The position numbers and the translations under genes are program-made. The notes under the pieces were generated by a model. It was not told where the DNA came from. It made no database searches and saw only the letters and a list, made by a program, of their open reading frames with translations. Positions 41,740-59,627 of a stretch of 64,000 nucleotides of DNA are shown here, in pieces. The stretch is from positions 124,001 through 188,000 of the IMG/VR virus record IMGVR_UViG_3300032242_002041, one strand, 5' to 3'. Every line of letters begins with the position of its first letter. Within the stretch, counting starts at the first letter, position 1.

Positions 41740-42077
41740 TATGTAATATTATGTTCCCAAAATTGAACCTTCAACCGAGTTTCAGGATCAAGTGTTGCCG
41801 GATCCTTTGCTTGCATTAATTCAACCCATTTCATGTAAGCCTTCCTGCCATCGCCTTGTGCTTTGGCACGCCGCCCACATTCTTCACACACGTGAAATGC
41901 CTGAACTAAAATTTTTCCATCTTTTTTAGGATAGACTTCAAAATCTTCTTTAGTAAATTTATCCACACACCCATTAAATGTGCAAACCACTTCCATGGTC
42001 ACTGGGTCTAAAAAAGCTACATCAACTTTCTTTTTTGACATTTTTTTAATCATTACTTGCCCCAACCATTGCCCCAC
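41739..42077 (-). CDS. Hypothetical protein
   Basis: ORF track; CEEC; exact start uncertain. Confidence 0.6.
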   Translation of the reverse strand: MGQWLGQVMIKKMSKKKVDVAFLDPVTMEVVCTFNGCVDKFTKEDFEVYPKKDGKILVQAFHVCEECGRRAKAQGDGRKAYMKWVELMQAKDPATLDPETRLKVQFWEHNIT

Positions 42078-42919
42078 AAGTCTACATGTAAACGTGGACT
42101 ATAATTAAATCCACGTTCACAGCAAATATTGGCAATGTTTAGTTTATTTGATTCATACGGATCTACAACACCGCCTTGTGGCATTAGATAGACAACACCT
42201 GTAAATCCACCTGCACGAAAAGCATCAACGGCCCGAACAGCTTCATTGACATGATCTTCAGTTTCAACAACAAACTTAAGATATACGTGTCCGTATGTTT
42301 GATATTCGGCAACAATATCAGGACAAATGGCATCTTCCCAACGTTCGCCACTGGCACTTAGTTTAGCACTGACACTAAAGGTAACTTCTTTGTCTTCACA
42401 ACCATAGGTCCAAAAATTGTCAACCAAAAACTTTTTAAAATCTTCAGATAATGCTTGGGTGCCATTGGTTTCAAATGTAAGATTTTTTAAATCTGCCATA
42501 CGAGGATGACTCAACAATTCACCATAAGCACGTTGCCAACCTAGCAACGGCTCTCCACCTGTAATAACCAAGTGTACATCATTGCCGTTGTTCTGTGCCC
42601 ACTGACGATTGGGAGTTAGATCTGTCATATGTGTTACAAGTTCTTCTGTAGTGTAACTAGGCGATAAATGCTTAAATGCAGGATGCCACGACGCATAGCT
42701 GTCACATCCTGTTTCTACCAAGGGCAAGTCCAAAAAGTTATTGTACATATGGACAACTTCGGCTACATCGTCGGCACCTGTGCTCTTCTCACCTGGCTTA
42801 CAACCAAACCCACTACAGGTAAAGTTACAGCCATAAGTGCGTAAGAACACACTAGGCACACCAACAAAGCGTCCTTCGCCTTGTAAACTATAAAATATTT
42901 CGCTTACTTTTATTTTCAT
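42053..42919 (-). CDS. queE: 7-carboxy-7-deazaguanine synthase (radical SAM)
   Basis: SEIFYSLQGEG, FLRTYGCNFTCSGFGC, ITGGEP, ETNG, PRLHVDLW. Confidence 0.9.
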   Translation of the reverse strand: MKIKVSEIFYSLQGEGRFVGVPSVFLRTYGCNFTCSGFGCKPGEKSTGADDVAEVVHMYNNFLDLPLVETGCDSYASWHPAFKHLSPSYTTEELVTHMTDLTPNRQWAQNNGNDVHLVITGGEPLLGWQRAYGELLSHPRMADLKNLTFETNGTQALSEDFKKFLVDNFWTYGCEDKEVTFSVSAKLSASGERWEDAICPDIVAEYQTYGHVYLKFVVETEDHVNEAVRAVDAFRAGGFTGVVYLMPQGGVVDPYESNKLNIANICCERGFNYSPRLHVDLWGNGWGK

Positions 42920-43413
42920 TTCCACCAATCTTCCCAAGGAAAAACAATCCACACGTCTTCTTCAGCCTTATTTAGGTCAACGGCTGAGTAGCTAACATTT
43001 AATTCACTAGTACTCGCTTCATTATCTACTAACACAGCAACACGAACAGTATCGCCCCAGATCTCTTGCCACTTTGGATTGTCCGGTAAACTACTACTCA
43101 TCCAATCTTCTCGGATCCAATTTAGTGTAGCACCCGAGTCGTTAATATCGTCCACAATAAGAATACGCCGTTGTTCAAAGGCATCTTCACTCATCCATAG
43201 GTTCGATTCGGGTTGGCTAGTATCATCACGCAAACTAACCTTAAGACATTCCATTGGACATTCTAAGTACTGACTAATTAGATTAGCTGGCACTAGTCCG
43301 CCACGAGTAAGTCCAACTACATAATCAGGCCGCCATGGATCCAGTGCCATTTGACGTAGGATTTCTTGTGTTTGTGCTTCGACATCTTGCCAGGTATAAT
43401 ATACTTTTTTCAT
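42916..43413 (-). CDS. Purine phosphoribosyltransferase (type I PRTase)
   Basis: GLTRGG, ILIVDDINDSGAT, WIVFPWE. Confidence 0.88.
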   Translation of the reverse strand: MKKVYYTWQDVEAQTQEILRQMALDPWRPDYVVGLTRGGLVPANLISQYLECPMECLKVSLRDDTSQPESNLWMSEDAFEQRRILIVDDINDSGATLNWIREDWMSSSLPDNPKWQEIWGDTVRVAVLVDNEASTSELNVSYSAVDLNKAEEDVWIVFPWEDWWK

Positions 43414-43419
43414 GTTACA

Positions 43420-43448
43420 ATTATACAATACTTGCCAACACTTGTCAA
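43420..43448 (-). promoter_or_regulatory. Sigma70-type promoter
   Basis: TTGACA-17-TATAAT. Confidence 0.9.
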
Positions 43449-43451: not shown

Positions 43452-44165
43452 TTATTCTATATGTAATTGATCGTTTATGTTTTTAATGATTTGTAATTTG
43501 GCATCGGCATTTCGACTACCATGCCAATGAACGATTCTGGATTCCTCAAGACGGCAACCATTCCAATTATCGGTATAGTCCTTGGCATCTTGTGGCCCAG
43601 GCAACCAAGGTCCTTGATAGGCCATGTGTGGCATGCGAGCCTGTTCTATAGTTAGTCCTTGCTCCCACATCATTTTGTTCAGAATAACCTGTTCGGTATT
43701 CCATTCTTCCATGTCCCAATTTTCTGCCATGTTCAAACCAAAATTCCAAATGTCTTGACTCATTTCGGCTGGATAGTATCTAACATCGGCGTTGAAGAAA
43801 TGTGGTATGTCTTGGAACTGTCTTGGATCAGTGTAGTTGAACATACGGAATTCTTTGAAATGGCCAAAGAAATCGACCGGTGCAATGGCCTGCACGTCTA
43901 TGCCACAGTATAAAATATTACAAGGCTCACTGCGCCACAGATCGTAAATTTCAAAAAAGTTTTTACGGAATGTATCTCTAATGTTATCGGTTTCTTCGTT
44001 GTAAAAAACCAATTCCCAATCACCTTGAACAAAGCGTTTTAAACTTTTCAAAGTAATTTCGTGCATCTCCATATATTTGGAGTATATGTCACCTTCGTCA
44101 CTGCGATCCTTAAACCATTCTGGACTTTTAATTTTATGTAAACTGCGAACTAGATAATTTTTCAT
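43452..44165 (-). CDS. Putative GT-A nucleotide-diphospho-sugar transferase
   Basis: ILYCGID, NTEQVILN, IVHWHG; inside sugar operon. Confidence 0.55.
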   Translation of the reverse strand: MKNYLVRSLHKIKSPEWFKDRSDEGDIYSKYMEMHEITLKSLKRFVQGDWELVFYNEETDNIRDTFRKNFFEIYDLWRSEPCNILYCGIDVQAIAPVDFFGHFKEFRMFNYTDPRQFQDIPHFFNADVRYYPAEMSQDIWNFGLNMAENWDMEEWNTEQVILNKMMWEQGLTIEQARMPHMAYQGPWLPGPQDAKDYTDNWNGCRLEESRIVHWHGSRNADAKLQIIKNINDQLHIE

Positions 44166-45109
44166 TGTTGTAACCATTCTGTATGTTGAGAAGACCATTG
44201 AACAAATTGTTCAATGCCTGATGTGCCGGTATATTTAGGTTCAAATCCTGCGGCAAGTATTTTTTTGTTGCTGACGCTATACCTGGCACCGTGCCCTGGG
44301 CGATCTGCCGACTTTACTTCATACCGTAAATCTTGACCAAACAACTGACTGATATATTGAGCGGTGGTCAACAAAGGTTGCTCAGAGTCACCACCCAGGT
44401 TATAAGTATCTACAAATCCGTTCAATGGGCTATACAACAAGAACTGTATGGCTTGGGCACAATCTTCCACATGTAACCAAGCACGTTGATCGGTGTTGCC
44501 GTTGTGGTCTCCGTGTAAAGTTATGGTTTCTTGCTGTAATATAGAACGAACCACCAAACTAAAAAACTTGCCAGGCAATTGTCTGGCACCGTAGATATTT
44601 TGTGCTCGCAATATAGTACAAGGAATTTTATAACTTTGTGCCCAGGCCGATACCAACATTTCGCCTGCGGCTTTGGTGCCACTATAAGGACTACGACAAT
44701 TTAGTGGGTCTTGTTCGGTCCAAGAATCGTTGTTGACGTTTGGGCCATACACTTCTCCGCTGGAAACGTAAATGAATCTTTTTAAATTTTTACTGGTATG
44801 TGCGTATTCCAACATGTTGGCAGTCAAAACTACATTGTCCTCAACTGCCTTGAGTGGATCTTGTAACGTATCTCCTACCTGTGCATTGGCTGCACAATGC
44901 ACAATGTAATCAATTGCTATTGTTGTGGGAAGTTTTTGAACTAGGTCAACTCGGTCAGCAAAATCAGGATGGCTGTCAATGACCCACTGTAATCGTTTGC
45001 TGATGTTTCTAATGACGCATACAATGTGGTAGTCTGTTTCTTTTAAAAAATAATCCAGTGCATGATGCCCCAGGAATCCTGTAGCGCCGGTTAGCAATAG
45101 AGTTGTCAC
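44162..45109 (-). CDS. NAD-dependent epimerase/dehydratase
   Basis: GATGFLG, SSGEVYG, YSGTK; GTG start. Confidence 0.88.
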   Translation of the reverse strand: MTTLLLTGATGFLGHHALDYFLKETDYHIVCVIRNISKRLQWVIDSHPDFADRVDLVQKLPTTIAIDYIVHCAANAQVGDTLQDPLKAVEDNVVLTANMLEYAHTSKNLKRFIYVSSGEVYGPNVNNDSWTEQDPLNCRSPYSGTKAAGEMLVSAWAQSYKIPCTILRAQNIYGARQLPGKFFSLVVRSILQQETITLHGDHNGNTDQRAWLHVEDCAQAIQFLLYSPLNGFVDTYNLGGDSEQPLLTTAQYISQLFGQDLRYEVKSADRPGHGARYSVSNKKILAAGFEPKYTGTSGIEQFVQWSSQHTEWLQQ

Positions 45110-45627
45110 AGTGATTCCTGATCTACAAATTTGGGCCAAGCACGGTCTTTGTCACTGACTACCGCAGGTTCATGAAGCCAAGGCAGGCCAAGATCTGAAT
45201 CGTTCCAGACAATGCCTGTTTCTGCGGTTGGTGCATAGTAGCCATCCAAGTGATACTGTATAACAGTGTCTGGCTCCAAGGTCAATACACCATGATAGCA
45301 ACCGGGTGGAACTATTAACATACTAGGGTCTTGGTCAGTTAAAGTAAAACTAAAAATCTTACCGTAATTTGGACTATTTCGACGACCATCGACAAATATG
45401 TCCTGTATGGTACCTTTGATCACTGAGATAGCTTTACAAGTGCGATTGGGCTGGCGCTGTGCGTGTAGGCCTCTAAGCGTATATGCTTTTTTGGTATAAG
45501 AAGTGTTGGTCTGCAAAAAGTCGTTAGCAAATCCTGCATCGGCAAGACGTTGCTTGTTATAAGTTTCACTAAACCATCCGCGATTGTCATGAAACTTTGT
45601 TAGGTTTACTAGTAGGTGATCTTGCAT
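45106..45627 (-). CDS. rmlC: dTDP-4-dehydrorhamnose 3,5-epimerase
   Basis: FHDNRGWFSE, LRGLH, PPGCYHG, VSDKD. Confidence 0.9.
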   Translation of the reverse strand: MQDHLLVNLTKFHDNRGWFSETYNKQRLADAGFANDFLQTNTSYTKKAYTLRGLHAQRQPNRTCKAISVIKGTIQDIFVDGRRNSPNYGKIFSFTLTDQDPSMLIVPPGCYHGVLTLEPDTVIQYHLDGYYAPTAETGIVWNDSDLGLPWLHEPAVVSDKDRAWPKFVDQESL

Positions 45628-46667
45628 TAGATTTTAAGCCAGCGATCGTTTTTGAGTGTCCAAGTAACCATTTGTTTGATACGGGTGTCAAAATCATACT
45701 TGGGTTCCCAACCTAACCCTTTCATGTATTCGCCACTGAGACTGTAACGAAAATCGTTACCAGGACGCTCTGGATCGTGTCCTACCATGACATATTTTAA
45801 TTCTCGTCCTAGTAAGGTAGCAATTTTCTGGGCCACAACTAAATTACTAATTTCCAATTGACCAACAATGTTAAACTTGGGGCAAGTGGCACCGCCAAAG
45901 TCACTGGCCAGTGGAAAGCCCTTGTGTGGCAAGTCCATAATGAACATGGTGGCATCGGCTACATCTGCGGCATGCACCCAGTGGCGCAGTCCACTTTGAG
46001 TTCCTGTGGCTTCGTCACAGTAGATGACAACAGTTTCATCTGCCAATACCTTACGCACAACCAATGGAATAAACTTTTCTGGACTTTGACGCTCGCCAAA
46101 CACGTTCATGGTGTGCGTACAGTAGATAGGCATGCCAAAGGTGTTTTCGTAGGCAATGCACAATTCTTCACCGCCGGCCTTGGTGGCACTATAAGGACTG
46201 CGACTGTTGTAGCGATCCCACTCTTGGTACTCCACACCTTCGGGGGCATCTCCAAACACTTCGTCTGTACCAAAATATATAAACTTTTCTAATTTGGGCA
46301 AATAATGTCTAGCGTAGTCCAACAGGTTACAGGTTCCTACCACGTTGTCTTGCACAAACATCATAGGGTTTTCGATCGAACGAGTAACGTGGCTACCTGC
46401 GGCCATGTGAATGATAAAATCAACAGGACCAATTTGATGTGCCAACTGTGGGTTAATTTCGGCACGTAAATCATGATAAATGAACTTTAGGCGGCTCATG
46501 GCATCTGTGCCAAACTCTTGACTCAATTCATACAGTCGATTTAGATTGCCTGAAAAGTCCAAACGATCTAGACAGGTAATTTCATATTCTTCGTGTTTGA
46601 GCAAGCGACGAATCATATGGTGCCCAATGAATCCTGCACCACCGGTTACTAATACAGTTTTTTTCAT
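45627..46667 (-). CDS. rmlB: dTDP-glucose 4,6-dehydratase-like
   Basis: GGAGFIG, AAGSHV, TDEVFG, PYSATK, EKFIP, RPGNDFRY. Confidence 0.88.
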   Translation of the reverse strand: MKKTVLVTGGAGFIGHHMIRRLLKHEEYEITCLDRLDFSGNLNRLYELSQEFGTDAMSRLKFIYHDLRAEINPQLAHQIGPVDFIIHMAAGSHVTRSIENPMMFVQDNVVGTCNLLDYARHYLPKLEKFIYFGTDEVFGDAPEGVEYQEWDRYNSRSPYSATKAGGEELCIAYENTFGMPIYCTHTMNVFGERQSPEKFIPLVVRKVLADETVVIYCDEATGTQSGLRHWVHAADVADATMFIMDLPHKGFPLASDFGGATCPKFNIVGQLEISNLVVAQKIATLLGRELKYVMVGHDPERPGNDFRYSLSGEYMKGLGWEPKYDFDTRIKQMVTWTLKNDRWLKI

Positions 46668-47488
46668 CGTTGAGTTCTTATTTCAAATTGTTGCATTTGG
46701 CCATTTACATCGTTTTCTCGTAGCACTTGCCAAGGATCTTGTTTACCAGATTTGACATTGTCCCAGAATGTAGGATTTAATCCTTGACTTTTTAAATACT
46801 CATTGAGTTTGTCGCATTCCTTGAATCGTATCTGTGATGTTGGAGGGTAGTGAAAATCTCTAGGATTGCTAGGATTACCTTCTAATAACTCACGTTCTTT
46901 ATAAGTAGCATCTAAGTTATTACCAGTGAGGTCGGCACGATCGTGCAGGACATCGACTTCAATACGCTGATAAATGTCTACACAATATGCATTTTGACTT
47001 AACCAAGCATCGTTCATACTATGTAAACTCAAATGACCGATTACATCTAGCCAGGCCCTGGGCACAATGGGAAATATACTGTAGGGATGATCGTTGTGAG
47101 TATGAACTGCCAGGAGTTTAAACTGGCCGGTGTACTTGCAAATTTCAGTATCCCAGCCTTGTGTTTCCATTACAGCATCATCGTTCCAGAAAAACATCCA
47201 ATCTGCTGAACTAGCGTGTGCCAAGGTGTTTACATAATCGTGTAATCGACTATACCCCATTGGGTCAAAACTCATGGCAGTATAATGCACTCCCATGTCA
47301 TCCAATTTGGGCTGTAGTTTTTCTTGAAAATGTTCAATACCGACAGTATCATCGGTATCTAGTCCTAACAAAACCTGTATACTATCTAGGTCTGTGGTTA
47401 ATTCTAGCAACCCAACAAGGCTACGATCCAATGCCGCTGTGCGGCCTCGTGTGGGTAATAATATGGCTATTTTGTATTCGTTTGTCAT
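46664..47488 (-). CDS. GT2-family glycosyltransferase
   Basis: ILLPTRGR, FFWNDD; TATAAATA at 47497-47504. Confidence 0.8.
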   Translation of the reverse strand: MTNEYKIAILLPTRGRTAALDRSLVGLLELTTDLDSIQVLLGLDTDDTVGIEHFQEKLQPKLDDMGVHYTAMSFDPMGYSRLHDYVNTLAHASSADWMFFWNDDAVMETQGWDTEICKYTGQFKLLAVHTHNDHPYSIFPIVPRAWLDVIGHLSLHSMNDAWLSQNAYCVDIYQRIEVDVLHDRADLTGNNLDATYKERELLEGNPSNPRDFHYPPTSQIRFKECDKLNEYLKSQGLNPTFWDNVKSGKQDPWQVLRENDVNGQMQQFEIRTQR

Positions 47489-47534: not shown

Positions 47535-48050
47535 TTAGTCTTCGTAAGTAGCTGAATTAGCACCATGTTCAAACACTTCTACAGATTTAATCCTAACTGT
47601 TGGATTGATCGGATAACGCATGTCGCCACTAGCCAACAGTTCAGCCATTTTGTTATAGGCCAGTTTGGCAAACATTTCACAGCCTACTCCGGGCACAATG
47701 CGCAGATCACACAAGGCACCGCGTTCATACGGCAACTTGCTTAGATGATTTTTGCTGTCAACATTTACAATTTCGTTCATGTGTTTGAAAAAATCTAACA
47801 TTGGATCGTCTTCGGCCACGACCAAAGTATGATCAAACATATAGTCTGCCCATGCTTTGAATTCTTTCAAACCACCAAAGTCCATACACCAGTTTTTGTC
47901 ATCTAGTGTATCACATTCAAAGATTAATTTGATACCAATTGAGTATCCGTGAAGTGTTGAGCAGTGACTATGAGTCGCTCTCCACTGTCTAAAACAGCAT
48001 GAAAGTCCGCGATCGTTGCCGTAAGTTTTTGTTGAATAGTACTTTGCCAT
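47535..48050 (-). CDS. queD: 6-carboxy-5,6,7,8-tetrahydropterin synthase
   Basis: CSTLHGY, MDFGGLKEFK, FDHT, FEHGANSA. Confidence 0.88.
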   Translation of the reverse strand: MAKYYSTKTYGNDRGLSCCFRQWRATHSHCSTLHGYSIGIKLIFECDTLDDKNWCMDFGGLKEFKAWADYMFDHTLVVAEDDPMLDFFKHMNEIVNVDSKNHLSKLPYERGALCDLRIVPGVGCEMFAKLAYNKMAELLASGDMRYPINPTVRIKSVEVFEHGANSATYED

Positions 48051-48133: not shown

Positions 48134-48288
48134 TTATCGCTGTTTGGTGCTTCTGGTTTTGTTGATGGCATTACCTTATCTATAGCAGGATTGATATAGG
48201 GTTCTACCACAGTTTTTTGGGCAGTGCCCCAACCAATGGCAGAGAAGAAGCCAATTACTATCCAGGTTCCAATCAATTCAATGATCAT
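48127..48288 (-). CDS. Small membrane protein (53 aa)
   Basis: Manual translation MIIELIGTWIVIGFFSAIGWGTAQKTVVEPYINPAIDKVMPSTKPEAPNSDNK. Confidence 0.65.
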   Translation of the reverse strand: MIIELIGTWIVIGFFSAIGWGTAQKTVVEPYINPAIDKVMPSTKPEAPNSDNK

Positions 48289-51306: not shown

Positions 51307-51337
51307 TGTATAACCTAGATTAATTAACAATACTAGT

Positions 51338-52283: not shown

Positions 52284-52877
52284 TTAATCAATTATTTTAA
52301 TTTTTCGGCAATCTGGATATGCTATGAATTTAGGCGCTTCGTTAACCAGTGGCAGTAATTGACTTCCTAATTCTGCTTCTTCCGTTGTGGGTTTATAGTG
52401 ATAACCTACGTGGAACACTTCTTGTGCTTGCCAGGGCACAATCCTCAGGTCACGACCATCATAGCGTTGAGCCAACATTACCTTGTAGGCCACAGGATCA
52501 TCTAGCAAGATAGCACCACAGCGACCAATCTCTAATGGCTTGGTGCGCCCAAAACTTACACAAGTTAATGTGCCAGGACGATACATGTTGCGCTCTAATC
52601 TGCGAGCACTATCCCAAATCCTAGTAAATTCAAATTTATATTCACCAATCCATTCTTGTCTGTTTGGGTGTTCGTGATAACTGTACTTGATACCCAGCTT
52701 GTGCATGGTCATAGGCACACTCAAATATGTAAAAGGAGTAAAACAAGTTTCTTTTACACGGTCGTATCTCATACATAATTCAATAGCATGAGTACAACAG
52801 TCAGTCATTACAGTATAAGGAGCACCTGTGTACTCGGCTAACTCTTGTTCAAATTTTAGTATACTGTCAAAGCTCAT
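52284..52877 (-). CDS. Short DegT/DnrJ-like PLP-dependent sugar aminotransferase
   Basis: CCTHAIEL, WDSA, SFGRTKPL, GAI. Confidence 0.75.
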   Translation of the reverse strand: MSFDSILKFEQELAEYTGAPYTVMTDCCTHAIELCMRYDRVKETCFTPFTYLSVPMTMHKLGIKYSYHEHPNRQEWIGEYKFEFTRIWDSARRLERNMYRPGTLTCVSFGRTKPLEIGRCGAILLDDPVAYKVMLAQRYDGRDLRIVPWQAQEVFHVGYHYKPTTEEAELGSQLLPLVNEAPKFIAYPDCRKIKIID

Positions 52878-53824
52878 TGATTATACCACTTCCATACATG
52901 GTTAATTATATCTGTCATAACAAATTTTGGTTGCCAGCCACTGACCTTTGTAAACTTGCCAGCATCAGCTGTTAGAATAGCTGGGTCACCTTCGCGCTTT
53001 GGTCCATGTAACATGGGAATATTAACGCCGGTAATCTGTGCAGACGCACGAACAATTTCAAGATTACTATATCCAGTGTTAGTACCGAGATTATAGATGT
53101 CGCTAGGAATAGTTCGATCCATTGCCAAGATATGTGCCTCGGCCAAGTCTTCCACGTGAATATAATCACGAATACAAGTGCCATCTGGTGTAGGATAATT
53201 AGTTCCATACAAAGTAAAATCTTGTTTGTTTTTAACTGATTCTAATACTCGAGCAATAATATGTGTTGCACCTGCGGCTTGTCCATGCCGGGCTAGGCTA
53301 TCTGCACCACACGCATTAAAATAACGAAAACTCACATAGTCTAAACCATAAGCACGATGATAACTGGCCAACATCCAATCAATCATCAACTTGCTTTCGC
53401 CATACGGGCTGATCGGTTCTTTGGGATCAATTTCCTGCACAGGAGTTATGACGGGATTGCCGTAGGTTGCAGCACTGCTACTAAAAATAAATCTAACTTG
53501 TTTATCGTGATTCCTAATCAAATAGTCTAGTAGGATTTTAGTTTTGATAAAATTGTTGTTGTAGTACTCTTGAGGATCTTGCATACTAGGACCAACTAAG
53601 CTGGTACCAGCACAATGAATAACAGCGTCTGGACAAAATCGCTTGATAGCATCCAGCCCTAGCTCAGCTGCAAAGTCTCCAGTATGCCACTGGCACGGAA
53701 CAGGAATCAAGTTACCAGGAGGCATTACCCGATCAATCGCTAATACATCGTGCCCGTCATCCACTAATTTTAATAATGTTTCCCCGCCAATGAATCCAGC
53801 AGCACCAGTGACTACTACTTTCAT
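52874..53824 (-). CDS. galE: UDP-glucose 4-epimerase
   Basis: GAAGFIG, SSSAATYG, PYGESK, RYFNACG, DGTCIRDYIHVEDLA. Confidence 0.9.
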   Translation of the reverse strand: MKVVVTGAAGFIGGETLLKLVDDGHDVLAIDRVMPPGNLIPVPCQWHTGDFAAELGLDAIKRFCPDAVIHCAGTSLVGPSMQDPQEYYNNNFIKTKILLDYLIRNHDKQVRFIFSSSAATYGNPVITPVQEIDPKEPISPYGESKLMIDWMLASYHRAYGLDYVSFRYFNACGADSLARHGQAAGATHIIARVLESVKNKQDFTLYGTNYPTPDGTCIRDYIHVEDLAEAHILAMDRTIPSDIYNLGTNTGYSNLEIVRASAQITGVNIPMLHGPKREGDPAILTADAGKFTKVSGWQPKFVMTDIINHVWKWYNQ

Positions 53825-55026
53825 CCTTCAATTTTCCTTACGTGATACTTGGCTTGGCTTACATGATCGCGATAACGATTGCCTGCACGATTCCACTGTT
53901 CACCGTTACCTTCTAAGATGTCCACAATACGATCCACAGTGCCATCAGTCCAGTCACTGATCAGGCCTGTATTGTGATGTAATTCACCTAACAAGTTTTC
54001 TAACTTGTGATAAGCGTCATCAATGCTCCAAGGAACATATAACCTGTTAGGATCGTCAGCAAAAGTTTCAGGGAAACTGCGATAAGCAGGATAAAGCACA
54101 TTAGAGCCAAGTGTGTCTGCTTCCGAGACGGTGTTGCTGACCCAGTCTTGTAAAGCACAATTAAACAATACCCGAGTATCATTGAGCAAATTATAGTAAT
54201 CATTTTTCTTTAAGTTTTCATAGATTGTAAGTTTACCTTCGCTTTGCAAAACTCTTGCTCTAGTTACATATTCTGAATTATTACTACGCAATGGACCACC
54301 TTGGAATATGGCAAATTCAATATCTTTATGACGACCTTGGCTATAGTACATGTCAATCAAATCCATAAAGAAACCTGGTTGTTTCTCTTGGTCAAATCTA
54401 GCTGCAAACCCCACTCGGATCTTACGTTCATTAAATGGTTTAATATTTTGAGCGCCACCAATGCGTTCTAGCACCTCTTCTTTGCCAAAAGCAAGTCCAG
54501 AGATATTGTAGATTGGAGCCGACCAACCTGCAATACGCATATGAGCCACCATCTCTTCGTTAGTGGCCAACACACCTGTTACGAACTCATTGACCATCTT
54601 CTCATATAAGTCCATCCACTTGGCCATACCCCAGACATGAACAAAGTCGTCTGGATCAATTGCTTGTGCCAGACAACGCACAAAGACCTTAGGACGTTGC
54701 TCCGCTGGAATTTGATCCATAATGTATGGCAACGATTCGATGCCTGGCTGGAACATGTCTTCAAAGTAGATAACGTCTTCACTAGTTACATCACCGTTAC
54801 GCATCATTTGAACCAAGTTCATCATTTGACTCATGCCAAAGTAACTGCGACCGTGTGCGTCTAGCACCTGTCCAACACTAATACTTTGCGTGTTGTCAAT
54901 AGTATTGCCAGGAACATAGACTACATCTAGTCCACGACGATCAAATACACGCCGATTCCATTCTGTAAGTTGTAGAGTGTAGCGAGCCTCATATGACTCC
55001 AAGCCCATATAGAATAATTTACGCAC
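53821..55026 (-). CDS. GT-B (GT4-like) glycosyltransferase
   Basis: GTG start VRKLFYMGLE; FAARFDQEKQP; EADTLG; YRSFPE. Confidence 0.7.
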   Translation of the reverse strand: MRKLFYMGLESYEARYTLQLTEWNRRVFDRRGLDVVYVPGNTIDNTQSISVGQVLDAHGRSYFGMSQMMNLVQMMRNGDVTSEDVIYFEDMFQPGIESLPYIMDQIPAEQRPKVFVRCLAQAIDPDDFVHVWGMAKWMDLYEKMVNEFVTGVLATNEEMVAHMRIAGWSAPIYNISGLAFGKEEVLERIGGAQNIKPFNERKIRVGFAARFDQEKQPGFFMDLIDMYYSQGRHKDIEFAIFQGGPLRSNNSEYVTRARVLQSEGKLTIYENLKKNDYYNLLNDTRVLFNCALQDWVSNTVSEADTLGSNVLYPAYRSFPETFADDPNRLYVPWSIDDAYHKLENLLGELHHNTGLISDWTDGTVDRIVDILEGNGEQWNRAGNRYRDHVSQAKYHVRKIEG

Positions 55027-55256: not shown

Positions 55257-55718
55257 TTAAATTACAGTTGATTGTGTTGGACGAGTAAGATTATAACTAA
55301 TGGAGCATCCGTTCTCGCCGTCTTCGGATACTTCAATTACTACAGCACGACCGGGATAGCGTTCGGCTATCTTTAAATATAAATCATCGGCAATCATTTC
55401 ACATGATTTCCAGTCTAGTTCTAAAACGGGATTCGAAACAATTCCGTTATTGGAATAGAGATTTTCAAGCCACCGTTTGAATTGGATGAATTCGATATCT
55501 CTGTCGTTATGGAAGACATCGATTGACACCCGGAAATGAAAGATATGGCGATGAGGACTGGCCAAAAACGATACATCATATTCTCCTGCTGTGCATAATG
55601 CTGGGTCTGTTGCAGCCGCTGGATAGCGATGAATGCCTTCCTTACGGAATGTAACCCAAATTTGTCTCTGGGCTGCCGCTTTAATGCGTTCAATAGTTTC
55701 GCGTTCTTGTTGTATCAT
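55257..55718 (-). CDS. T-fold QueD paralog, DpdL-like (candidate CDG decarboxylase)
   Basis: LASPHRHIF fits the LxxxHRHxF signature recalled for DpdL; SCEMIA, SEDGENG. Confidence 0.6.
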   Translation of the reverse strand: MIQQERETIERIKAAAQRQIWVTFRKEGIHRYPAAATDPALCTAGEYDVSFLASPHRHIFHFRVSIDVFHNDRDIEFIQFKRWLENLYSNNGIVSNPVLELDWKSCEMIADDLYLKIAERYPGRAVVIEVSEDGENGCSISYNLTRPTQSTVI

Positions 55719-56890
55719 TTCTGGTGGCTTTCTATATTAGTATTATTAAACGAGTCAATGGCATCATACATATCTGGAAAAATTGCACGACTATTTAATT
55801 TTCTATCTTGGTCTAATTTGTTAAATTCTTCTACTGTATATTCAAGTCCGTCCCAATTGGATTTATAGGGAGTTCGATCGTCGTTTAACGAGGCAATTAC
55901 GTTGTCAATGCCAAGAATATTTGAATAATCATTTTTAGAAATTCGCTGTCTAACCAACTCTCTCTGGTGATCAGTTAGTCGTTGAATTGCCCACGGACCA
56001 CCATTATCTCTCAGATTGTAGATATTAATAGTTATTGCTCGATGAGATATATTCAAAGTTTGATGCACCAAATCAATAAAATCCCAAATTGACAACGAGT
56101 TAATATTCATAAACACCATGTTAAAACTAAGGTGATGCTTTGCAATCAAGTTAATTGTGTGTAAATTTTCTAAGAAAACATTCCATTTTCCGGGCCAACG
56201 AATATATTCATATTGTTCTGCAATTGATTCTCCGCTAACTAACCATTGTACATTACTAAACTGTTTCAACAATTCAAAAATTTTATTTTCGTGTATTAGG
56301 CTAAGATTAGTATTAACACAAATACGACAAGATTTATTAACTTCTAATAATTTTCTTAAGACTATTTCGTTTTCTTTTATCATCAACGGCTCGCCACCAG
56401 CAAGATATATTTCTTTAAGGTCGGCAGCAGATTCTAAAACATAATCTAACAAATCTCCTTTGGCTTCTTTCATCTTAACTACTTGATATTTCTGTTCGGC
56501 CCATAGTGAGCTGAGCTCAGGGTCACAATATATGCAGGCAAAATTGCAGGTATTGTTCCAACGCAAATCAAGATATTTTAAATTAAAGTTATCAATATTG
56601 TTGTAAAACTCATCACCAAGATGGTTATATTTCTTTTTAAAATGATGTTGTAAAGTATGAGTACCAATCTGAGAGTGGCAATTTTTACACCCTTCAACCG
56701 GAATATCATTTAACATCATTGTTTTGATATCGAGATTATTAGAGCCGCTTATTGTGTCTTTGATTGCAGGAGTTTTATTAATATTACCTAATTTATTTTT
56801 ACTCACACAACAATTTTCTATATTGCCTTGGGGGTCAATATACAGTGAAACCCACGGCGCTGGACAGAAATGTTTATTATCTATGGTCAT
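55715..56890 (-). CDS. Twitch-domain radical SAM protein
   Basis: N-terminal CPAPW...CC; CNFACIYC; AGGEPL. Confidence 0.85.
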   Translation of the reverse strand: MTIDNKHFCPAPWVSLYIDPQGNIENCCVSKNKLGNINKTPAIKDTISGSNNLDIKTMMLNDIPVEGCKNCHSQIGTHTLQHHFKKKYNHLGDEFYNNIDNFNLKYLDLRWNNTCNFACIYCDPELSSLWAEQKYQVVKMKEAKGDLLDYVLESAADLKEIYLAGGEPLMIKENEIVLRKLLEVNKSCRICVNTNLSLIHENKIFELLKQFSNVQWLVSGESIAEQYEYIRWPGKWNVFLENLHTINLIAKHHLSFNMVFMNINSLSIWDFIDLVHQTLNISHRAITINIYNLRDNGGPWAIQRLTDHQRELVRQRISKNDYSNILGIDNVIASLNDDRTPYKSNWDGLEYTVEEFNKLDQDRKLNSRAIFPDMYDAIDSFNNTNIESHQK

Positions 56891-57216
56891 TTTTGTAGCA
56901 ATTCCATAGTTACAATTTTACCAATTGATTCAGATAAGTTTTCATCAGGGGTAACAATGTGTAGTTTAATCCGTTCTTCGTCTTTTTTGTGGTCATAATA
57001 TTTGGTTTCAATTACTGTACCACCCGATACCTGTTGTACACGGAAGCGTATTGGATCCGGAAGTTCGAGACAATCTTTCGTCTCAACGTCACAGTCATCA
57101 AAACTGACGCTAATACTTCCACGTCCAATCCTAGCAGGTTTACTTTTTTCTTCACTTAATTCGTAACTAAAATCCCAACCCCATGCAACTATCTTTGCCC
57201 ATAACCATCTAATCAT
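56887..57216 (-). CDS. Hypothetical protein
   Basis: ORF track. Confidence 0.65.
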   Translation of the reverse strand: MIRWLWAKIVAWGWDFSYELSEEKSKPARIGRGSISVSFDDCDVETKDCLELPDPIRFRVQQVSGGTVIETKYYDHKKDEERIKLHIVTPDENLSESIGKIVTMELLQK

Positions 57217-57728
57217 TTGATAACCTCGTCCTTTGTGTATTTAGACCAGTCAGTAAACACCTCACGTTTTTGTAAATCGTGTAACGAGTGGCACCAGACG
57301 CCTGGGTTTGTTGCTGCAAAATCTCGGTCATCAATTTTAAGAGTAGCATTGTATCCAAACTGTTTAATATAAGGAAGTTTAACGCTAATCATTGGAATGA
57401 AGTTATGGAATTCTACCAGTGCGGATTCAAGTAATCCTTCTGCCTGTTGAATATCTAAATCCAAAGTACATAACCAGCCAGCTTCCAAGCAGTCTTGTAC
57501 CATGACTTCCCAATCACGCCATGCATCACCGTCATTTTTATCCAATGCTGGAAAACTCTGATTGGCACCAAAGTAGATATGTTCAATGTTGTTATTCTTT
57601 GCTTCCTGTTGGACGATTTGTGAATCCTGTACACCTACTACAAATAGTGTACGGCGTCCAAACGCAGGGGTATGTTCTACTTCGGTTCCTGTAAAGAAAC
57701 TTACTTCTTCGTGTCCTGCTCTAATCAT
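57213..57728 (-). CDS. Hypothetical protein in the deazaguanine cluster
   Basis: MIRAGHEEVSFFTGTEVEH...HIYFGANQSF...TNPGVWCH. Confidence 0.75.
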   Translation of the reverse strand: MIRAGHEEVSFFTGTEVEHTPAFGRRTLFVVGVQDSQIVQQEAKNNNIEHIYFGANQSFPALDKNDGDAWRDWEVMVQDCLEAGWLCTLDLDIQQAEGLLESALVEFHNFIPMISVKLPYIKQFGYNATLKIDDRDFAATNPGVWCHSLHDLQKREVFTDWSKYTKDEVIK

Positions 57729-57927
57729 TTTGTTCTGTATTATAATGGGTGGATGGATTATTTTCTTGTTTAAGTATAACAATTTGTTTTTTTAATTGCA
57801 ACCTTTGTTTCTTCAAATCAGTTAGTTCAACATCATCAAACACACCGGTGCTTTCCAAACCGTCAATTCTTTTGTTGAGTGCGTGGTGTGCTTCTTCTAA
57901 ATGTTTAATTCTTCTTTCCCAAGACAT
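57721..57927 (-). CDS. DUF465/YdcH-like coiled-coil protein
   Basis: HLEEAHHALNKRI...LKKQRLQLKKQI. Confidence 0.65.
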   Translation of the reverse strand: MSWERRIKHLEEAHHALNKRIDGLESTGVFDDVELTDLKKQRLQLKKQIVILKQENNPSTHYNTEQND

Positions 57928-59627
57928 TAGGCCTCCAGATTATCTAGTTTTGATTCATCTAAATCGGCATCATCTCCATCAATGCCATCGTTTGATTCCT
58001 CTACTTCAAATAATGCATTAAATTGACTGTGTGCGTTTTTGGCTTTTTTACCTTTGAATCCGCGTGTGCCTACAATGTCCATCCAGTAACGATCATAAGA
58101 CTCAATAATGGCTTCGGCTTCGGCACGATCAGGCGTAGCAAAGATGGCTTCTACAATGTCTTTAAATCGTGTATGATCTCCGTTTTGATCCCACATCATG
58201 GCGGGCCAAGATCCGTTGTCATATTCACGATTAGCTCTTTGTACAGCTTCTAGGTGCATCCAAACATTATGGCCCATTAGTAATGCATAACTAAAACTAT
58301 CCCACGATGTCTTGCCTTCTTTGCCAATCTTGTTCAACATACCAGGTTGATAGTAACAAACATCCTTCATTTGTAACTGTAGACTGATTGGACTCTCGTC
58401 AAAGTGATCAACAAGACCATCGGCTACTACCGCTTGTCCATACGGACGAGTATCTGTTGAATACTTTTTATCGTCCGCAATTGGACTCATTCGATAGCAC
58501 CACTTTTCGTTGTGTGGAAGGTCGATGTGGTGGTAGACTTGCCCATTTGCTGTAGCCAAAAACGGCGAAGCACAATCAAAACTAATAGTAAAAGAAGGAT
58601 TAACATACTTACGAACTGCACGTTGAATGTCTGTAAGTAATACTGCCCACTCTAATTTACTTGTGCCCAAGAAGTGCATCCAATCATGCACACCTTCTTT
58701 TAACAAGCCATCGTGGCGTAATGCTACAAGTCTACGCAGGACCAAATGCACATCGCACATGTTCTGACCACCCATTGACCAACCATCAAAGTGTGTGTCT
58801 GGGTATATGGCAGGGTCACAATAGTGTTTCATTGTTTCATACCAACGATCTGCGTCAGCGTGATTGGCACCTTGTAAAACATTAAGAACTTTCATGCCAC
58901 CATTCTTGGCGCCCTTGCGGTGCTTCATGTAATAGTCATTATTATATTTGGTAGCAGCCACAGCTTCTTCTAGTGTAGTAATGCCACACTTGGCGCTGGC
59001 GTGTTTGTCATGTATGACCCAGGTTGGTATATCAAGTGTCATACCATAGTCGGCAACACCATCTAACCATTTGAGTACAGCTTCACGTTTCTTCTGTGCA
59101 GCATCTAATAGATTTTGATAATTTTTAACATGATCAATCTTAATGTATTTGGTATTACCATTCTTATCGTGCTTGGGGGTACCATCGGGTTTAAGATCCG
59201 GCACATGCTCAACACCCTTGGCCCGGAGCTCGGCCATCTTGGCCAACACCACTGGACTTGTTGGGTCGCGCCACTCACCTTCCCATAGACCTTTGGCAAT
59301 TTGGAATCCACCTGAGTCGCCTAGCATTACAGTGCCAGGTTCACGATTACGAACCATATCCTCTGACCAGTCTTGTTTGGTTAGATCCAAGTTGGCATGT
59401 CCACCCGAATACAAAGACCACTTATATGGAAATAAGCTCTTGGCGCTGTTAAGCCAGTTCATCATTTCCATATCTTTCATGCCAGCTGGCATACGAGTTT
59501 TTGGGTCTACATACGGTCCGTTTACTGGATCTCGTTGTTTACCTATGTAAGTGGCATAGAAACCACTAATAGCTGGCAAGAACACAGCATAATCGTTTTG
59601 TTTGGCTGTAAGATTATCTTGAGTCAT
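57927..59627 (-). CDS. TGT-superfamily guanine transglycosylase (DpdA-like)
   Basis: LGDSGGFQ, MTLD, VLQG, HFLG, SFDCASP; co-located with folE/queD/queE. Confidence 0.8.
   Translation of the reverse strand: MTQDNLTAKQNDYAVFLPAISGFYATYIGKQRDPVNGPYVDPKTRMPAGMKDMEMMNWLNSAKSLFPYKWSLYSGGHANLDLTKQDWSEDMVRNREPGTVMLGDSGGFQIAKGLWEGEWRDPTSPVVLAKMAELRAKGVEHVPDLKPDGTPKHDKNGNTKYIKIDHVKNYQNLLDAAQKKREAVLKWLDGVADYGMTLDIPTWVIHDKHASAKCGITTLEEAVAATKYNNDYYMKHRKGAKNGGMKVLNVLQGANHADADRWYETMKHYCDPAIYPDTHFDGWSMGGQNMCDVHLVLRRLVALRHDGLLKEGVHDWMHFLGTSKLEWAVLLTDIQRAVRKYVNPSFTISFDCASPFLATANGQVYHHIDLPHNEKWCYRMSPIADDKKYSTDTRPYGQAVVADGLVDHFDESPISLQLQMKDVCYYQPGMLNKIGKEGKTSWDSFSYALLMGHNVWMHLEAVQRANREYDNGSWPAMMWDQNGDHTRFKDIVEAIFATPDRAEAEAIIESYDRYWMDIVGTRGFKGKKAKNAHSQFNALFEVEESNDGIDGDDADLDESKLDNLEA

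Follow-up and report, generated by a model that had tools for sequence, protein, structure and literature searches.

A phage glycosyltransferase family linked to DpdL-type 7-deazaguanine genes and the possibility of a glycosylated DNA base

Introduction

Does an interleaved run of 7-deazaguanine and sugar genes in an uncultured giant freshwater phage specify a glycosylated DNA base? The window analyzed here is a 64 kb stretch of a phage genome of at least 228 kb. Between positions 42053 and 59627 every gene is encoded on the minus strand, and packing is tight, with frequent overlaps of stop and start codons. Related loci of the clade likewise interleave deazaguanine with sugar genes in a single conserved co-directional array, within which the sugar cassette is variable. 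The explanation that we favor, as slightly more likely than not and with its chemistry untested, is a DpdL-type 7-deazaguanine DNA-modification module extended by a dedicated glycosyltransferase (GT) that glycosylates the base. If this is true, such phages, the cultured Pseudomonas phage PA5oct among them, carry a sugar-bearing DNA base that has not yet been described.

A 7-deazaguanine pathway without QueC

The genes predicted to synthesize 7-carboxy-7-deazaguanine (CDG), and two that accompany them, are as follows.

51397-52203, minus strand: folE, GTP cyclohydrolase I (Pfam GTP_cyclohydroI, 8e-39)
48285-48653, minus strand: HIT-family protein (Pfam HIT, 1e-9)
47535-48050, minus strand: queD, 6-carboxytetrahydropterin synthase (Pfam PTPS, 7e-15; PHROG QueD-like, 2e-35)
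42916-43428, minus strand: purine/xanthine-guanine phosphoribosyltransferase, PRT (Pfam Pribosyltran, 5e-17)
42053-42952, minus strand: queE, 7-carboxy-7-deazaguanine synthase, radical SAM (PHROG QueE-like, 2e-52)

NCBIfam FolE models match FolE at 1e-31 to 6e-39, every one under its cut-off. The N-terminal motif of QueE is matched by NCBIfam QueE models, while a Pfam search with this protein returned no match. Neither QueC nor QueF was detected by tblastn in the 64 kb window. Because the window is only part of that genome, a QueC encoded elsewhere is not excluded; the initial annotation's claim of a pathway without QueC thus holds for the window alone.

The PRT also matches a PDB purine PRT (1e-11) and NCBIfam XPRT (3.5e-14). 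It adjoins queE in about 70 of 80 queE-centred clade loci, is found next to QueE in BUCT-ZZ01 and PA5oct, and occurs in QueC-type loci as well. Its likely role, inferred from gene linkage only, is salvage of guanine set free by base exchange. The position of the HIT gene between folE and queD is kept across the clade.

DpdL, the DpdA-like enzyme and the replication genes

The upstream part of the array, extending to the DNA polymerase, contains the following genes.

55257-55718, minus strand: DpdL, a QueD-paralogous T-fold protein (motif LASPHRHIF, fitting LxxxHRHxF)
55715-56890, minus strand: radical SAM protein with an N-terminal twitch domain (NCBIfam NF033640, 4e-66, exceeding the cut-off)
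56887..57216, minus strand: small protein, 109 aa, variably present
57213..57782, minus strand: conserved protein between dpdA and dpdL, about 171 aa from its conserved start
57927-59627, minus strand: DpdA-like guanine transglycosylase, 566 aa (GDSGGFQ motif, TGT-like fold)
59631-60440, minus strand: clamp-like protein, 269 aa
within 59631..63604, minus strand: 323-aa protein with a weak methyltransferase signal
61346-63604, minus strand: polB, family-B DNA polymerase, upstream of dpdA

DpdL was defined by Cui et al. (2023, PMC10516641) as a proposed 7-carboxy-7-deazaguanine decarboxylase, an activity that has never been demonstrated. In tblastn comparisons, the window protein matches the DpdL of ACP17 (53%, 4e-37) and that of phiST (32%, 1e-9). 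The adjacent radical SAM gene is absent from most relatives and is interpreted as an accessory insertion in this phage. The 57213 protein occurs in nearly all clade loci and has a homolog next to ACP17 DpdA (HMM 6e-40 to 8e-41); it had no match in Pfam, PHROG or NCBIfam, and the 109-aa protein had none in family searches that included Pfam.

The 566-aa protein has no sequence match in Pfam (TGT included), PHROG or the PDB, and lacks the CxCxxC zinc motif. Its AlphaFold model (pLDDT 90) has just two significant PDB fold matches, a bacterial TGT (5lpt, 1.7e-6) and an archaeosine TGT (ArcTGT; 1iq8, 6e-4). Residues D104, S105, G107, D199, H318, G321 and D351 show full or almost full conservation across 49 diverse relatives, and hhalign relates the protein to the ACP17/X1/BUCT DpdA family (97.8%, E 7e-13). 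An insertion of 50-55 aa at about residues 122-176 is indicated by hhalign and by matches falling in two stretches. We conclude that the protein is a long, divergent member of the TGT superfamily, remotely related to TGT and DpdA.

The order polB, 323-aa gene, 269-aa gene, dpdA is kept in all clade loci, and polB, the 269-aa gene and dpdA also occur together in PA5oct, Vibrio phage 2.275.O and L265. In Phosso, the pair formed by polB and the clamp homolog is instead followed by dpdL and the GT in place of dpdA. Family searches with the 269-aa protein gave no match.

The initial annotation fared well here: its folE, queD, queE, LxxxHRHxF T-fold protein and galE are upheld by profile matches and the motif; its GT-B enzyme by the fold; its TGT/DpdA-like enzyme with an insertion of about 55 aa by the fold matches, GDSGGFQ and hhalign; and its mention of a DpdL-type decarboxylase proposed for dDG by Cui et al. 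Its neighboring polB also held, whereas its adjacent "clamp" held only in part, the annotation of the Phosso homolog as a sliding clamp being the sole support.

A glycosyltransferase that follows DpdL

Directly downstream of dpdL is the gene on which the proposal turns.

53821..55026, minus strand: GT-B (GT4-like) glycosyltransferase; the listed ORF extends to 55167

The conserved start is likely the GTG at 55026. The Pfam Glycos_transf_1 match is sub-threshold, and the AlphaFold model (pLDDT 79) retrieves GlgM, BshA, MshA, PimA/B and SenB with Foldseek (E 1e-10 to 1e-8, TM 0.5-0.63). These closest solved structures are GT4 enzymes working on small molecules or lipids. In BFVD the best named match is an ACP17 GT-family-1 protein (TM 0.69/0.80), and neither search places T4 DNA glucosyltransferases among the nearest structures. 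Invariant residues are kept across lineages of the family that share just 21-28% identity. No publication on this family was found in the literature searched.

The initial annotation held that a GT unlinked to dpdA in other genomes would refute its proposal. This was tested, and the outcome is strongly in its favor. In 80 IMG/VR viral loci picked by GT similarity alone, many of them just 4-7 kb long, at least one 7-deazaguanine gene is present in every case (DpdL in 59, DpdA in 55, QueE in 39 and FolE in 38), most commonly in the order DpdL-GT-DpdA, the genes lying 0-60 bp apart. When 185,579 species genomes were scanned, only seven matches emerged, all on MAG contigs and all with DpdL adjoining the GT. 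Among 50,697 phage records, the full-length GT is found only in DpdL-positive phages, namely PA5oct-like phages (11 records), ACP17, X1, BUDD, BCSR5, BUCT-ZZ01 and Phosso. No GT away from deazaguanine genes was seen in 87 independent retrievals and 18 cultured-phage records with a full-length member.

Six cultured lineages (PA5oct, ACP17, X1/BUDD, BCSR5, BUCT-ZZ01 and Phosso) have the GT near DpdL. In all of them except BCSR5, where the distance is about 2.7 kb, nothing or only dpdA lies between the two genes, and in all six the GT directly adjoins DpdL or DpdA. These lineages are unrelated, vary in gene order and use two DpdA subfamilies; GT-DpdL adjacency has outlasted rearrangement in the absence of other shared synteny. 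In most, no further sugar gene accompanies the GT. DpdL and the GT are both missing from loci that combine the window's DpdA type with QueC or QueF. Across loci, the GT follows DpdL rather than DpdA, and the family is phage-restricted, occurring only beside DpdL/DpdA genes.

Sugar genes

Further sugar-related genes, and one large interposed gene, lie within the array.

52874-53824, minus strand: galE, UDP-glucose 4-epimerase (NCBIfam TIGR01179, 296.9 bits vs a cut-off of 262.3)
52284..52877, minus strand: DegT-like protein of reduced length, 197 aa (Pfam DegT, 4e-12, covering a short segment)
48655..51330, minus strand: FG-GAP repeat protein, 891 aa (Pfam FG-GAP)
46664-47488, minus strand: second putative glycosyltransferase, 274 aa
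45627-46667, minus strand: dTDP-glucose 4,6-dehydratase-like protein (rmlB-like), sugar cassette
45106-45627, minus strand: RmlC, sugar cassette
44162-45139, minus strand: second 4,6-dehydratase-like SDR, sugar cassette
43452-44198, minus strand: unknown 248-aa protein, sugar cassette

The galE start overlaps the GT stop codon, and GalE matches a PDB GalE at 4.6e-72. The DegT-like protein aligns with enzymes of about 380 aa in two short stretches and retains the Lys of SFxxxK; its length is conserved in 34 clade homologs (192-222 aa). The call of a DegT-like aminotransferase is therefore only partly upheld, as the protein is a remnant relative to its family. The GT2 and GT-A-like calls also held in part: the 46664-47488 product, which adjoins queD throughout the clade, rests solely on a weak PHROG glycosyltransferase match (6e-9) without a match in Pfam or the PDB, and the 43452-44198 product matched nothing in family searches (Pfam, PHROG), which leaves that GT-A call unverified. 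The rmlBC placed between queD and queE is present, as rmlB-like and rmlC. Close relatives differ in what the cassette at 43452..46667 contains and in how long it is (2.6-5 kb). The FG-GAP gene is variable and missing from many relatives, and its product likely stands outside the pathway.

Proposed pathway

By homology, FolE, QueD and QueE would convert GTP to CDG; DpdL, QueC being absent, would remove the carboxyl group to give 7-deazaguanine, although this activity is undemonstrated; and the DpdA-like enzyme, encoded near polB, would put the deazaguanine in place of guanine in phage DNA. The remaining steps are inferred from linkage only. The GT may transfer a hexose to 7-deazaguanine, either as the free base before insertion or in DNA afterwards, so that virion DNA would contain a glycosylated 7-deazaguanine rather than plain dDG. 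Because GalE overlaps the GT gene, the donor in the clade is probably UDP-galactose or UDP-glucose. GalE, the DegT remnant, the HIT protein, the second GT and the dehydratase/epimerase cassette may supply or extend the sugar. Since 7-deazaguanine lacks a hydroxyl group, the sugar would have to be joined through an N- or C-glycosidic bond; the acceptor could be the exocyclic N2, the position used in huimycin, or the C7-H freed by decarboxylation, both being candidates only. A precedent exists in HuiG (GT4 family), to which the transfer of GlcNAc onto N2 of a 7-deazapurine base has been assigned. No GT4-like enzyme that acts on DNA is known to form an N- or C-glycosidic bond of this kind.

PA5oct has the same DpdA-GT-DpdL trio as the window phage. 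Its DNA withstands enzymes with G in their sites, and nucleases that recognize hypermodified DNA act against this phage. The only phage with measured dDG is phiST, which differs in having DpdL without the GT. As phiST makes dDG in this way, the GT is dispensable for decarboxylation and insertion, and the product of the GT could be something else. Expression of ACP17 dpdL and dpdA without the GT in E. coli yielded no dDG. The glycosylation proposal is weakened by the lack of a chemical datum from any GT-bearing phage, by the type of bond it requires, by the undemonstrated activity of DpdL and by the absence of T4 DNA glucosyltransferases from the nearest structural matches. The initial suggestion of dDG/dCDG or an undescribed sugar-decorated base is supported overall, but plain and glycosylated dDG cannot be distinguished from sequence.

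Alternative explanations

One unlikely alternative is that the DNA contains plain dDG (or dCDG), and that the GT and sugar genes serve to glycosylate another target, for example a virion protein, a glycan of the host envelope or a small molecule, being clustered for co-expression only. This is consistent with dDG formation by phiST, with the small-molecule and lipid enzymes closest to the GT in structure, with a variable cassette resembling surface-glycan diversity, and with the abundance of other auxiliary metabolic genes in the window. Against it, the GT was never found apart from deazaguanine genes, its adjacency to DpdL is kept despite rearrangement, and in most lineages it stands without another sugar gene.

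Also improbable is that the GT acts on a free base or nucleotide intermediate, the sugar being a transient handle or side product and the final base dDG. The DpdL-GT-DpdA order of the large marine group agrees with a succession of steps at the level of the base, HuiG-type enzymes use the free base as acceptor, the co-encoded PRT could produce nucleotides, and the ACP17 pair alone gave no dDG. However, the module has no conserved glycosidase or other sugar-removing enzyme, and phiST does without this step. TGT-family enzymes can accommodate a bulky group at position 7, as in queuine, and insertion of a glycosylated base is thus at least as plausible.

Slightly less likely again is replacement before replication. 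Here the PRT would turn CDG or 7-deazaguanine into a ribonucleotide, as in tubercidin biosynthesis, which would be reduced, phosphorylated to a dNTP and incorporated by the polymerase, leaving DpdA a proofreading or secondary role. In support, the PRT is almost always near queE, including in BUCT-ZZ01, PA5oct and marine loci; in the tubercidin pathway, a PRT acts on CDG and decarboxylation comes afterwards; and G is completely replaced in DpdA3-type phages. However, this PRT is also encoded with QueC-type clusters of the same DpdA family, and a general role such as guanine salvage therefore fits; moreover, DpdA is universally retained, and Cui et al. favor post-replication insertion (PMC10516641).

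Modification of tRNA rather than DNA, raised initially for the phage GUN tRNAs, is suggested by the TGT-like fold and by tRNA-Asn(GTT) and tRNA-Tyr(GTA) genes in the window (anticodons GUU and GUA), but it is very unlikely given the lack of a Pfam TGT match and zinc motif, the absence from the window of a preQ1/queuine pathway or detected preQ1 riboswitch, the homology to ACP17/X1 DpdA, the location beside polB and the clamp-like gene throughout the clade, and the coincidence of the homologous PA5oct system with G-specific restriction resistance.

Flanking genes

Two genes flank queE beyond the range initially described.

40722-41471, minus strand: nadE, NAD+ synthase
39430-40665, minus strand: nucleotide-sugar dehydrogenase (ugd)

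Both had been overlooked, as had the PRT near queE, the radical SAM gene near dpdL, the HIT gene and the second dehydratase-like SDR. In queE-centred clade loci, nadE is present in 30 of 80 and ugd in 44 of 80. It is conceivable, in principle, that the NadE-like PP-loop enzyme encoded close to queE amidates CDG, a possibility that counts against the favored explanation. Many further auxiliary metabolic genes are found within the window.

Gene content and order

The cluster belongs to an uncultured jumbo phage, the protein set of which recurs on contigs of 228-345 kb. All sequencing runs containing the region are freshwater or pond metagenomes, stored as assembled contigs, and in a megablast comparison with 50,697 deposited phage genomes the region had no nucleotide-level relative. 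From 63604 down to about 37700 every gene lies on the minus strand in tight packing, stop and start codons often overlapping. A promoter and terminator scan did not rise above shuffled expectation; the few near-consensus sites in intergenic gaps precede the genes for a purine phosphoribosyltransferase (PRT), queD, an FG-GAP protein and folE.

Table. Genes of the cluster in the direction of transcription, starting at polB
61346-63604, minus: polB
60385-61356, minus: 323-aa protein
minus: clamp-like protein, 269 aa
57927-59627, minus: tRNA-guanine transglycosylase (TGT)-like protein, 566 aa (DpdA)
minus: DUF465 protein, 68 aa
minus: unknown, 189 aa
minus: unknown, 109 aa
55715-56890, minus: radical SAM protein
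55257-55718, minus: T-fold protein (DpdL)
53821-55026/55167, minus: GT-B glycosyltransferase (GT)
minus: GalE, start overlapping the GT stop
minus: DegT remnant, 197 aa
minus: FolE
minus: FG-GAP protein
minus: HIT protein
minus: QueD
minus: putative glycosyltransferase, 274 aa (GT274)
minus: RmlC, flanked by two 4,6-dehydratase-like SDRs
minus: unknown, 248 aa
minus: PRT
minus: QueE
minus: two small ORFs
40722-41471, minus: NadE, about 600 bp downstream of queE
minus: nucleotide-sugar dehydrogenase

Deazaguanine synthesis genes and DpdL

Matches in Pfam or PHROGs support folE, queD and queE, all three of which had been called from sequence alone together with a second T-fold protein carrying the motif LxxxHRHxF. 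The latter call also held. This motif, which defines DpdL and stands in place of the CxxxHGH of QueD (Cui, Hutinet et al. 2023, PMC10516641), reads LASPHRHIF in the window and occurs as well in the DpdL homologues of ACP17, phiST, X1, BUCT-ZZ01 and marine phages. By tblastn the protein is 53% identical to the DpdL of ACP17 (4e-37) and 32% identical to that of phiST (CGPG_00067; 1e-9), the two DpdLs named in PMC10516641. We identify it as DpdL by motif and homology; the decarboxylation of 7-carboxy-7-deazaguanine (CDG) to 7-deazaguanine is proposed for this family and has not been demonstrated for any member.

DpdL, DpdA, FolE, QueD and QueE are thus co-encoded in the window and QueC is not. 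No match to QueC or QueF was found there by Pfam or by tblastn with the Vibrio-phage proteins, a search that covers only 64 kb of a genome of at least 228 kb, and the window does not qualify as a preQ0, preQ1 or archaeosine-type system (QueC, Gat-QueC, QueF or ArcS). NadE and QueC belong to the same PP-loop superfamily. As a substitute for QueC, NadE was set aside: it is a full-length NAD+ synthase above the family cut-off (TIGR00552, 168 bits against 64; QueC model only 1e-6), and it occurs in just 30 of 80 relatives.

The PRT gene accompanies DpdL-type and QueC-type clusters of this DpdA family alike. From this distribution we infer that PRT is best explained by salvage of the guanine freed in base exchange. 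The rival is a route through the nucleotide, as in tubercidin biosynthesis.

The transglycosylase-like protein DpdA

The 566-aa protein has no family match in Pfam, PHROGs, NCBIfam or the PDB (phmmer), and a 51-sequence profile of its family found nothing significant in the PDB, TGT appearing at E 1.4; its placement comes only from fold search and hhalign. The AlphaFold model (pLDDT 90) has a TGT-type TIM-barrel fold, and its only significant PDB matches are bacterial TGT 5lpt (1.7e-6) and ArcTGT 1iq8 (6e-4), with low TM-scores (0.28-0.40). In an alignment of 49 relatives (27-61% identity) a DSGGFQ motif is present, D104, S105, G107, H318, G321 and D351 are invariant and D199 is nearly so. The protein therefore has the catalytic-Asp motif and further conserved acidic residues of such an enzyme, the nucleophilic Asp itself remaining unidentified. 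It aligns with the DpdA of ACP17, X1 and BUCT-ZZ01 with 97.8% probability by hhalign (E 7e-13) and more weakly (75%) with DpdA3 of phiST; the subfamilies DpdA1, DpdA2 and DpdA4 were not in the comparison. The insertion of about 55 aa described in the initial annotation was confirmed as residues 122-176, which are inserted relative to most of the family and modelled with high confidence.

Base exchange on DNA by this protein has support from context only, namely its position beside polB and the resistance, at G-containing sites, of the DNA of its relative PA5oct. The initial annotation had offered as an alternative a tRNA-guanine transglycosylase. This was not borne out, as the protein has neither a match to Pfam TGT (PF01702) nor the CxCxxC of the CxCxxC...H zinc site.

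The glycosyltransferase

The call of a GT-B glycosyltransferase held for the fold, which is GT4-like with two Rossmann-like domains. Foldseek against the PDB returned GlgM, SPS, BshA, MshA, PimA/B and SenB (E 2e-10 to 1e-7; TM-scores 0.5-0.63), of which GlgM, BshA, MshA, PimA/B and SenB (E 1e-10 to 1e-8) are retaining GT4 enzymes. The top named viral structure match is an ACP17 protein labelled in UniProt as glycosyltransferase family 1. Over residues 195-345 there is a Pfam Glycos_transf_1 match, but at 13.5 bits it stays below the cut-off of 26.4. R210, E214, K215, E302 and E320 are invariant, with a spacing that differs from the canonical EX7E. A GTG start at 55026 is preferred because the N-terminus MRKLYYMGLE...RYT is conserved. 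The neighbouring GalE scores above the curated GalE cut-off. The sugar donor of the GT is inferred from this adjacent GalE and its acceptor from the linkage to DpdL; transfer activity is itself an inference.

The DegT-like aminotransferase of the initial annotation held only in part, being a 197-aa remnant. Because of their variation among close relatives, neither the radical SAM gene nor the rml genes were accepted as core components. The radical SAM gene (55715-56890; N-terminal-twitch type, NF033640, 4e-66) intervenes between dpdL and the 109-aa gene; it is missing there in most relatives, a few of which have weaker paralogues elsewhere. Comparison with loci L169-L248 from close relatives shows a hypervariable sugar cassette at 43452-46667, between GT274 and PRT, where the relatives carry 2.6-5 kb of differing SDR, dehydratase and unknown genes and RmlC is found only in the genome studied here. 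Such variation is what one would expect if diversifying selection acts on the structure being made.

Linkage of the glycosyltransferase to DpdL

The initial annotation held that its proposal of a glycosylated DNA base would be refuted if the GT proved unlinked to dpdA in other genomes. The comparison was made and linkage was found. Among 80 IMG/VR loci of close relatives (DpdA 64-94% identical to that of the window) one gene order is conserved, polB - 323 aa - 269 aa - dpdA - 189 aa - dpdL - GT, followed by galE - DegT remnant - folE - HIT - queD - GT274 - ... - PRT - queE. Variable elements within this set are the rml-type cassette and the genes for the radical SAM and FG-GAP proteins. Since the loci are related, this order alone could be inherited synteny.

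Outside this clade, loci were chosen by GT similarity only, with an alignment of the GT and distant relatives (21-28% identity). All 80 IMG/VR loci so retrieved, many of them no longer than 4-7 kb, have one or more deazaguanine genes in the flank (59 loci for DpdL, 55 for DpdA, 39 for QueE and 38 for FolE). Most often the genes stand in the order DpdL-GT-DpdA, 0-60 bp apart. A scan of 185,579 bacterial and archaeal species genomes, one for each species, yielded just seven GT loci, all of them on MAG contigs with DpdL adjoining; the GT family is therefore essentially confined to phages. The contigs with the DpdA-DpdL-GT module (L249-L255) are binned into MAGs with the labels Haliscomenobacter, Chitinophagales, Rickettsiales, Phycisphaerae and Syntrophomonadaceae. 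The phage module in these MAGs most likely reflects phage contamination of the bins, and the labels say little about hosts, pointing at best weakly to Bacteroidota in the case of the freshwater clade.

With the family HMM, six lineages of cultured phages were found to have the GT within or next to their DpdL cluster.

Table. Arrangement of GT, dpdA and dpdL in cultured phages
BUCT-ZZ01: folE - 447 aa - dpdA - dpdL - GT
X1/BUDD: GT - dpdA - dpdL - queE
ACP17: dpdA - GT - dpdL - queE
BCSR5: GT about 2.7 kb from dpdL, adjoining a 446-aa protein, possibly DpdA
PA5oct-like: dpdA gp168 - GT gp167 - dpdL gp166
Phosso: dpdL - GT, with dpdA far off in the genome

A tblastn search of the whole phage collection with three different GT members as queries recovered only these six lineages and one remote group. 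The phages phiST, RHph_I1_18, Bakedbeans, Ahp1, D479 and MA9V-3 have DpdL without a GT within 9 kb. Vibrio phage 2.275.O and locus L265 combine the DpdA type of the window with QueC or QueF and have neither DpdL nor GT; hence the GT follows DpdL and not DpdA generally. Our association counts are of loci and not of independent evolutionary events, but at least eight lineages with differing gene orders are represented.

Comparison with known systems

Among the closest known pathways is that of Cellulophaga phage phiST (FolE, QueD, QueE, DpdL and DpdA3; PMC10516641), which places the 7-deazaguanine nucleoside (dDG) in DNA. Shared with the window are a CDG pathway without QueC, a homologous DpdL with its motif, and a remote TGT-like DpdA adjoining replication genes. 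In contrast, phiST has no GT, and its DpdA3 is only 259 aa long and weakly related to the 566-aa protein; the window adds the GT-B enzyme, GalE, PRT and further sugar enzymes. Among DpdL phages, DNA has been analysed for phiST alone, and there are no chemical data for any GT-carrying phage. dDG was not obtained in E. coli from dpdL and dpdA of either phiST or ACP17, and Cui et al. suggested that other enzymes may be needed (PMC10516641). In ACP17 the GT sits between the dpdA and dpdL genes used in that attempt.

Pseudomonas phage PA5oct (Wroclawvirus) encodes a DpdA of the same family (32% identity, HMM 1e-166) in the trio DpdA gp168 - GT gp167 - DpdL gp166 (NC_071039.1 222985-226130), with polB upstream and PRT (gp163) and QueE (gp162) nearby. 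Unlike the window, the trio has no adjoining GalE, DegT-like gene or second glycosyltransferase, and its DpdL has HFH where the motif has HRH. PA5oct is subject to restriction by END nucleases, which respond to hypermodified DNA, and a modified G was inferred from its QueE and a PTPS gene, with neither base nor GT identified (PMC12191111). gp166-168 are annotated as hypothetical and the nature of the modification is unpublished.

A precedent for glycosylation of such a base exists in huimycin (PMC7439116) and dapiramicin (bioRxiv 10.64898/2026.04.15.718813), which share with the pathway inferred for the window a 7-deazaguanine base derived from FolE-QueD-QueE, a GT4-type GT-B enzyme and a UDP-sugar. 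The GT4 enzyme HuiG was assigned the attachment of GlcNAc to N2 of the 7-deazapurine base (PMC7439116), and in the predicted dapiramicin pathway RmlB/RmlD-type enzymes make a 6-deoxy sugar (bioRxiv 10.64898/2026.04.15.718813). These are, however, actinomycete secondary metabolites on preQ0, with QueC present, the product is an N2-glycoside of the free base, and neither DpdA nor DNA is involved. The likeness of HuiG to the phage GT rests on shared fold.

T4-type systems encode GT-B enzymes with base-modification genes and transfer sugar from a UDP-sugar onto the modified base in the major groove; the variety of sugars among T-even relatives fits an arms race with restriction systems. The base in T-even glucosyl-hmC is a different one, and the acceptor is the hydroxyl on hmC. 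Close similarity to T4 AGT or BGT (GT63/GT72) was not seen, the T4 enzymes being absent from the top 50 PDB matches of the GT, and a cyanophage 'DNA alpha-GT' ranks only 26th among its BFVD matches. In glycosylated queuosine, the GT4-like QTMAN and QTGAL likewise decorate a 7-deazaguanine derivative in nucleic acid, the acceptor there being the cyclopentenediol hydroxyl of queuosine in tRNA, whereas no queuosine pathway is present here. QTMAN-like bacterial clusters at ranks 34 and 47 among the language-model look-alikes of the GT are no more than a lead.

The remote GT group is found in Xanthomonas phage PhiXhv-12 (PV764601.1 120910-124996; HMM 8.7e-22), in PhiXhv-15, PhiXhv-16 and Ep026, and in Erwinia phage Ep032. 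The PhiXhv-12 protein lacks the N-terminal GLExYExRYT. Its gene lies in the order Gat-QueC fusion (QueC 2e-49 plus a GATase domain), PIG-L family de-N-acetylase, remote GT and GFO/IDH/MocA oxidoreductase, and the GT4 and PIG-L pair resembles MshA/MshB and BshA/BshB. It is possible that this group represents a second, different glycosylated deazaguanine system.

Proposed pathway and significance

By homology, FolE, QueD and QueE would convert GTP to CDG, and DpdL, the activity of which is unproven, would decarboxylate CDG to 7-deazaguanine. A DpdA-type enzyme encoded with replication genes would act on DNA. The GT would then add a sugar, either to the product of DpdL or to dDG already in DNA; this step is inferred, and its acceptor atom, sugar and timing are undetermined. 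We propose it because, whatever the lineage and despite rearrangements, the family is tied to DpdL alone, because catalytic-type residues are invariant across the family, because GalE adjoins and deazaguanine and sugar genes are interleaved within the clade, because the variable sugar cassette sits between GT274 and PRT and, by analogy, because of the HuiG precedent. One unproven idea is that decarboxylation would leave the pyrrole ring with an exposed, nucleophilic C7-H open to C-glycosylation, which would account for the GT following DpdL. A C7-glycosylated base would be 7-substituted, the kind accepted by TGT-family enzymes; queuine and preQ1 are substrates of this kind.

A bolder joint reading is that a GT-B family restricted to phages and not recognised before is the hallmark of a new DNA hypermodification, glycosylated 7-deazaguanine, and we regard it as no less likely to fail than to hold. 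In this reading the sugar would be C-glycosidic at the C7 freed by DpdL or N-glycosidic at N2, and the variable cassettes would diversify it. The carriers would be an abundant freshwater jumbo-phage clade and many marine phages, with PA5oct, ACP17, X1, BCSR5, BUCT-ZZ01 and Phosso among cultured ones.

Eight 7-deazaguanine derivatives are known in phage DNA, none of which, to our knowledge, bears a sugar, and sugar-decorated DNA bases have so far been mainly pyrimidines. In the literature searched we found no glycosylated deazaguanine in DNA and no GT tied to DpdL, and on DpdL itself nothing besides Cui et al. (PMC10516641). What is new here is the addition of a signature GT family to the known 7-deazaguanine DNA modification systems, with a prediction that covers several cultured phages. 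If correct, this would make glycosylated 7-deazaguanine a new natural DNA base of the purine type. The still unidentified modified G of PA5oct, a jumbo phage relevant to therapy, would be accounted for, and perhaps also the failed reconstitution of dDG with ACP17 genes. The DpdL-GT pair would be a simple genomic marker predicting the modification in metagenomes, and the GT a possible new enzyme for labelling nucleic acids. Phage engineering, sequencing, escape from restriction and CRISPR, and detection by modification-dependent nucleases are all affected by such a base. With more than 7,600 homologues, and 897 clusters at 50% identity, DpdA forms a very abundant family.

Other features of the region

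Over residues 160-270 the 323-aa protein (60385-61356) matches SAM methyltransferase domains, though below threshold (E about 1e-3); its position is conserved and its sequence diverges fast (30-50% identity among relatives). A glycosidase-like identity for the 189-aa protein between dpdA and dpdL was set aside, the atlas look-alikes being sub-threshold only (score 0.77). At 37702-39421 the sugar dehydrogenase is followed by a tandem pair of DUF6071 proteins and a 128-aa protein related to a PA5oct 'virion structural protein' (phrog_13349). Nearly all relatives share this arrangement, with one to three DUF6071 copies.

A permuted, two-piece tmRNA lies at 31238-31678 on the minus strand (Rfam 31386-31646; RF04321, 70.5 bits), for which ARAGORN predicts a tag peptide. 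Permuted tmRNAs are typical of a few bacterial groups, and this one may be a host hint. The window has 10 tRNA genes, at 11.5-35 kb. Four more radical SAM genes are clustered in 18802-22387 and 28716-30637, one with a B12-binding domain (19362-20930) and the others at 20927-22387, 28716-29762 and 29759-30637; a methyltransferase (18802-19365) and a weakly matched 2OG-Fe(II) oxygenase (25037-25807) are also encoded. Genes for a TRAP-transporter solute-binding protein (32626-33564; DctP family, 3e-54) and a TctC-like tricarboxylate receptor homologue (27739-28701) are unusual auxiliary genes for a phage.
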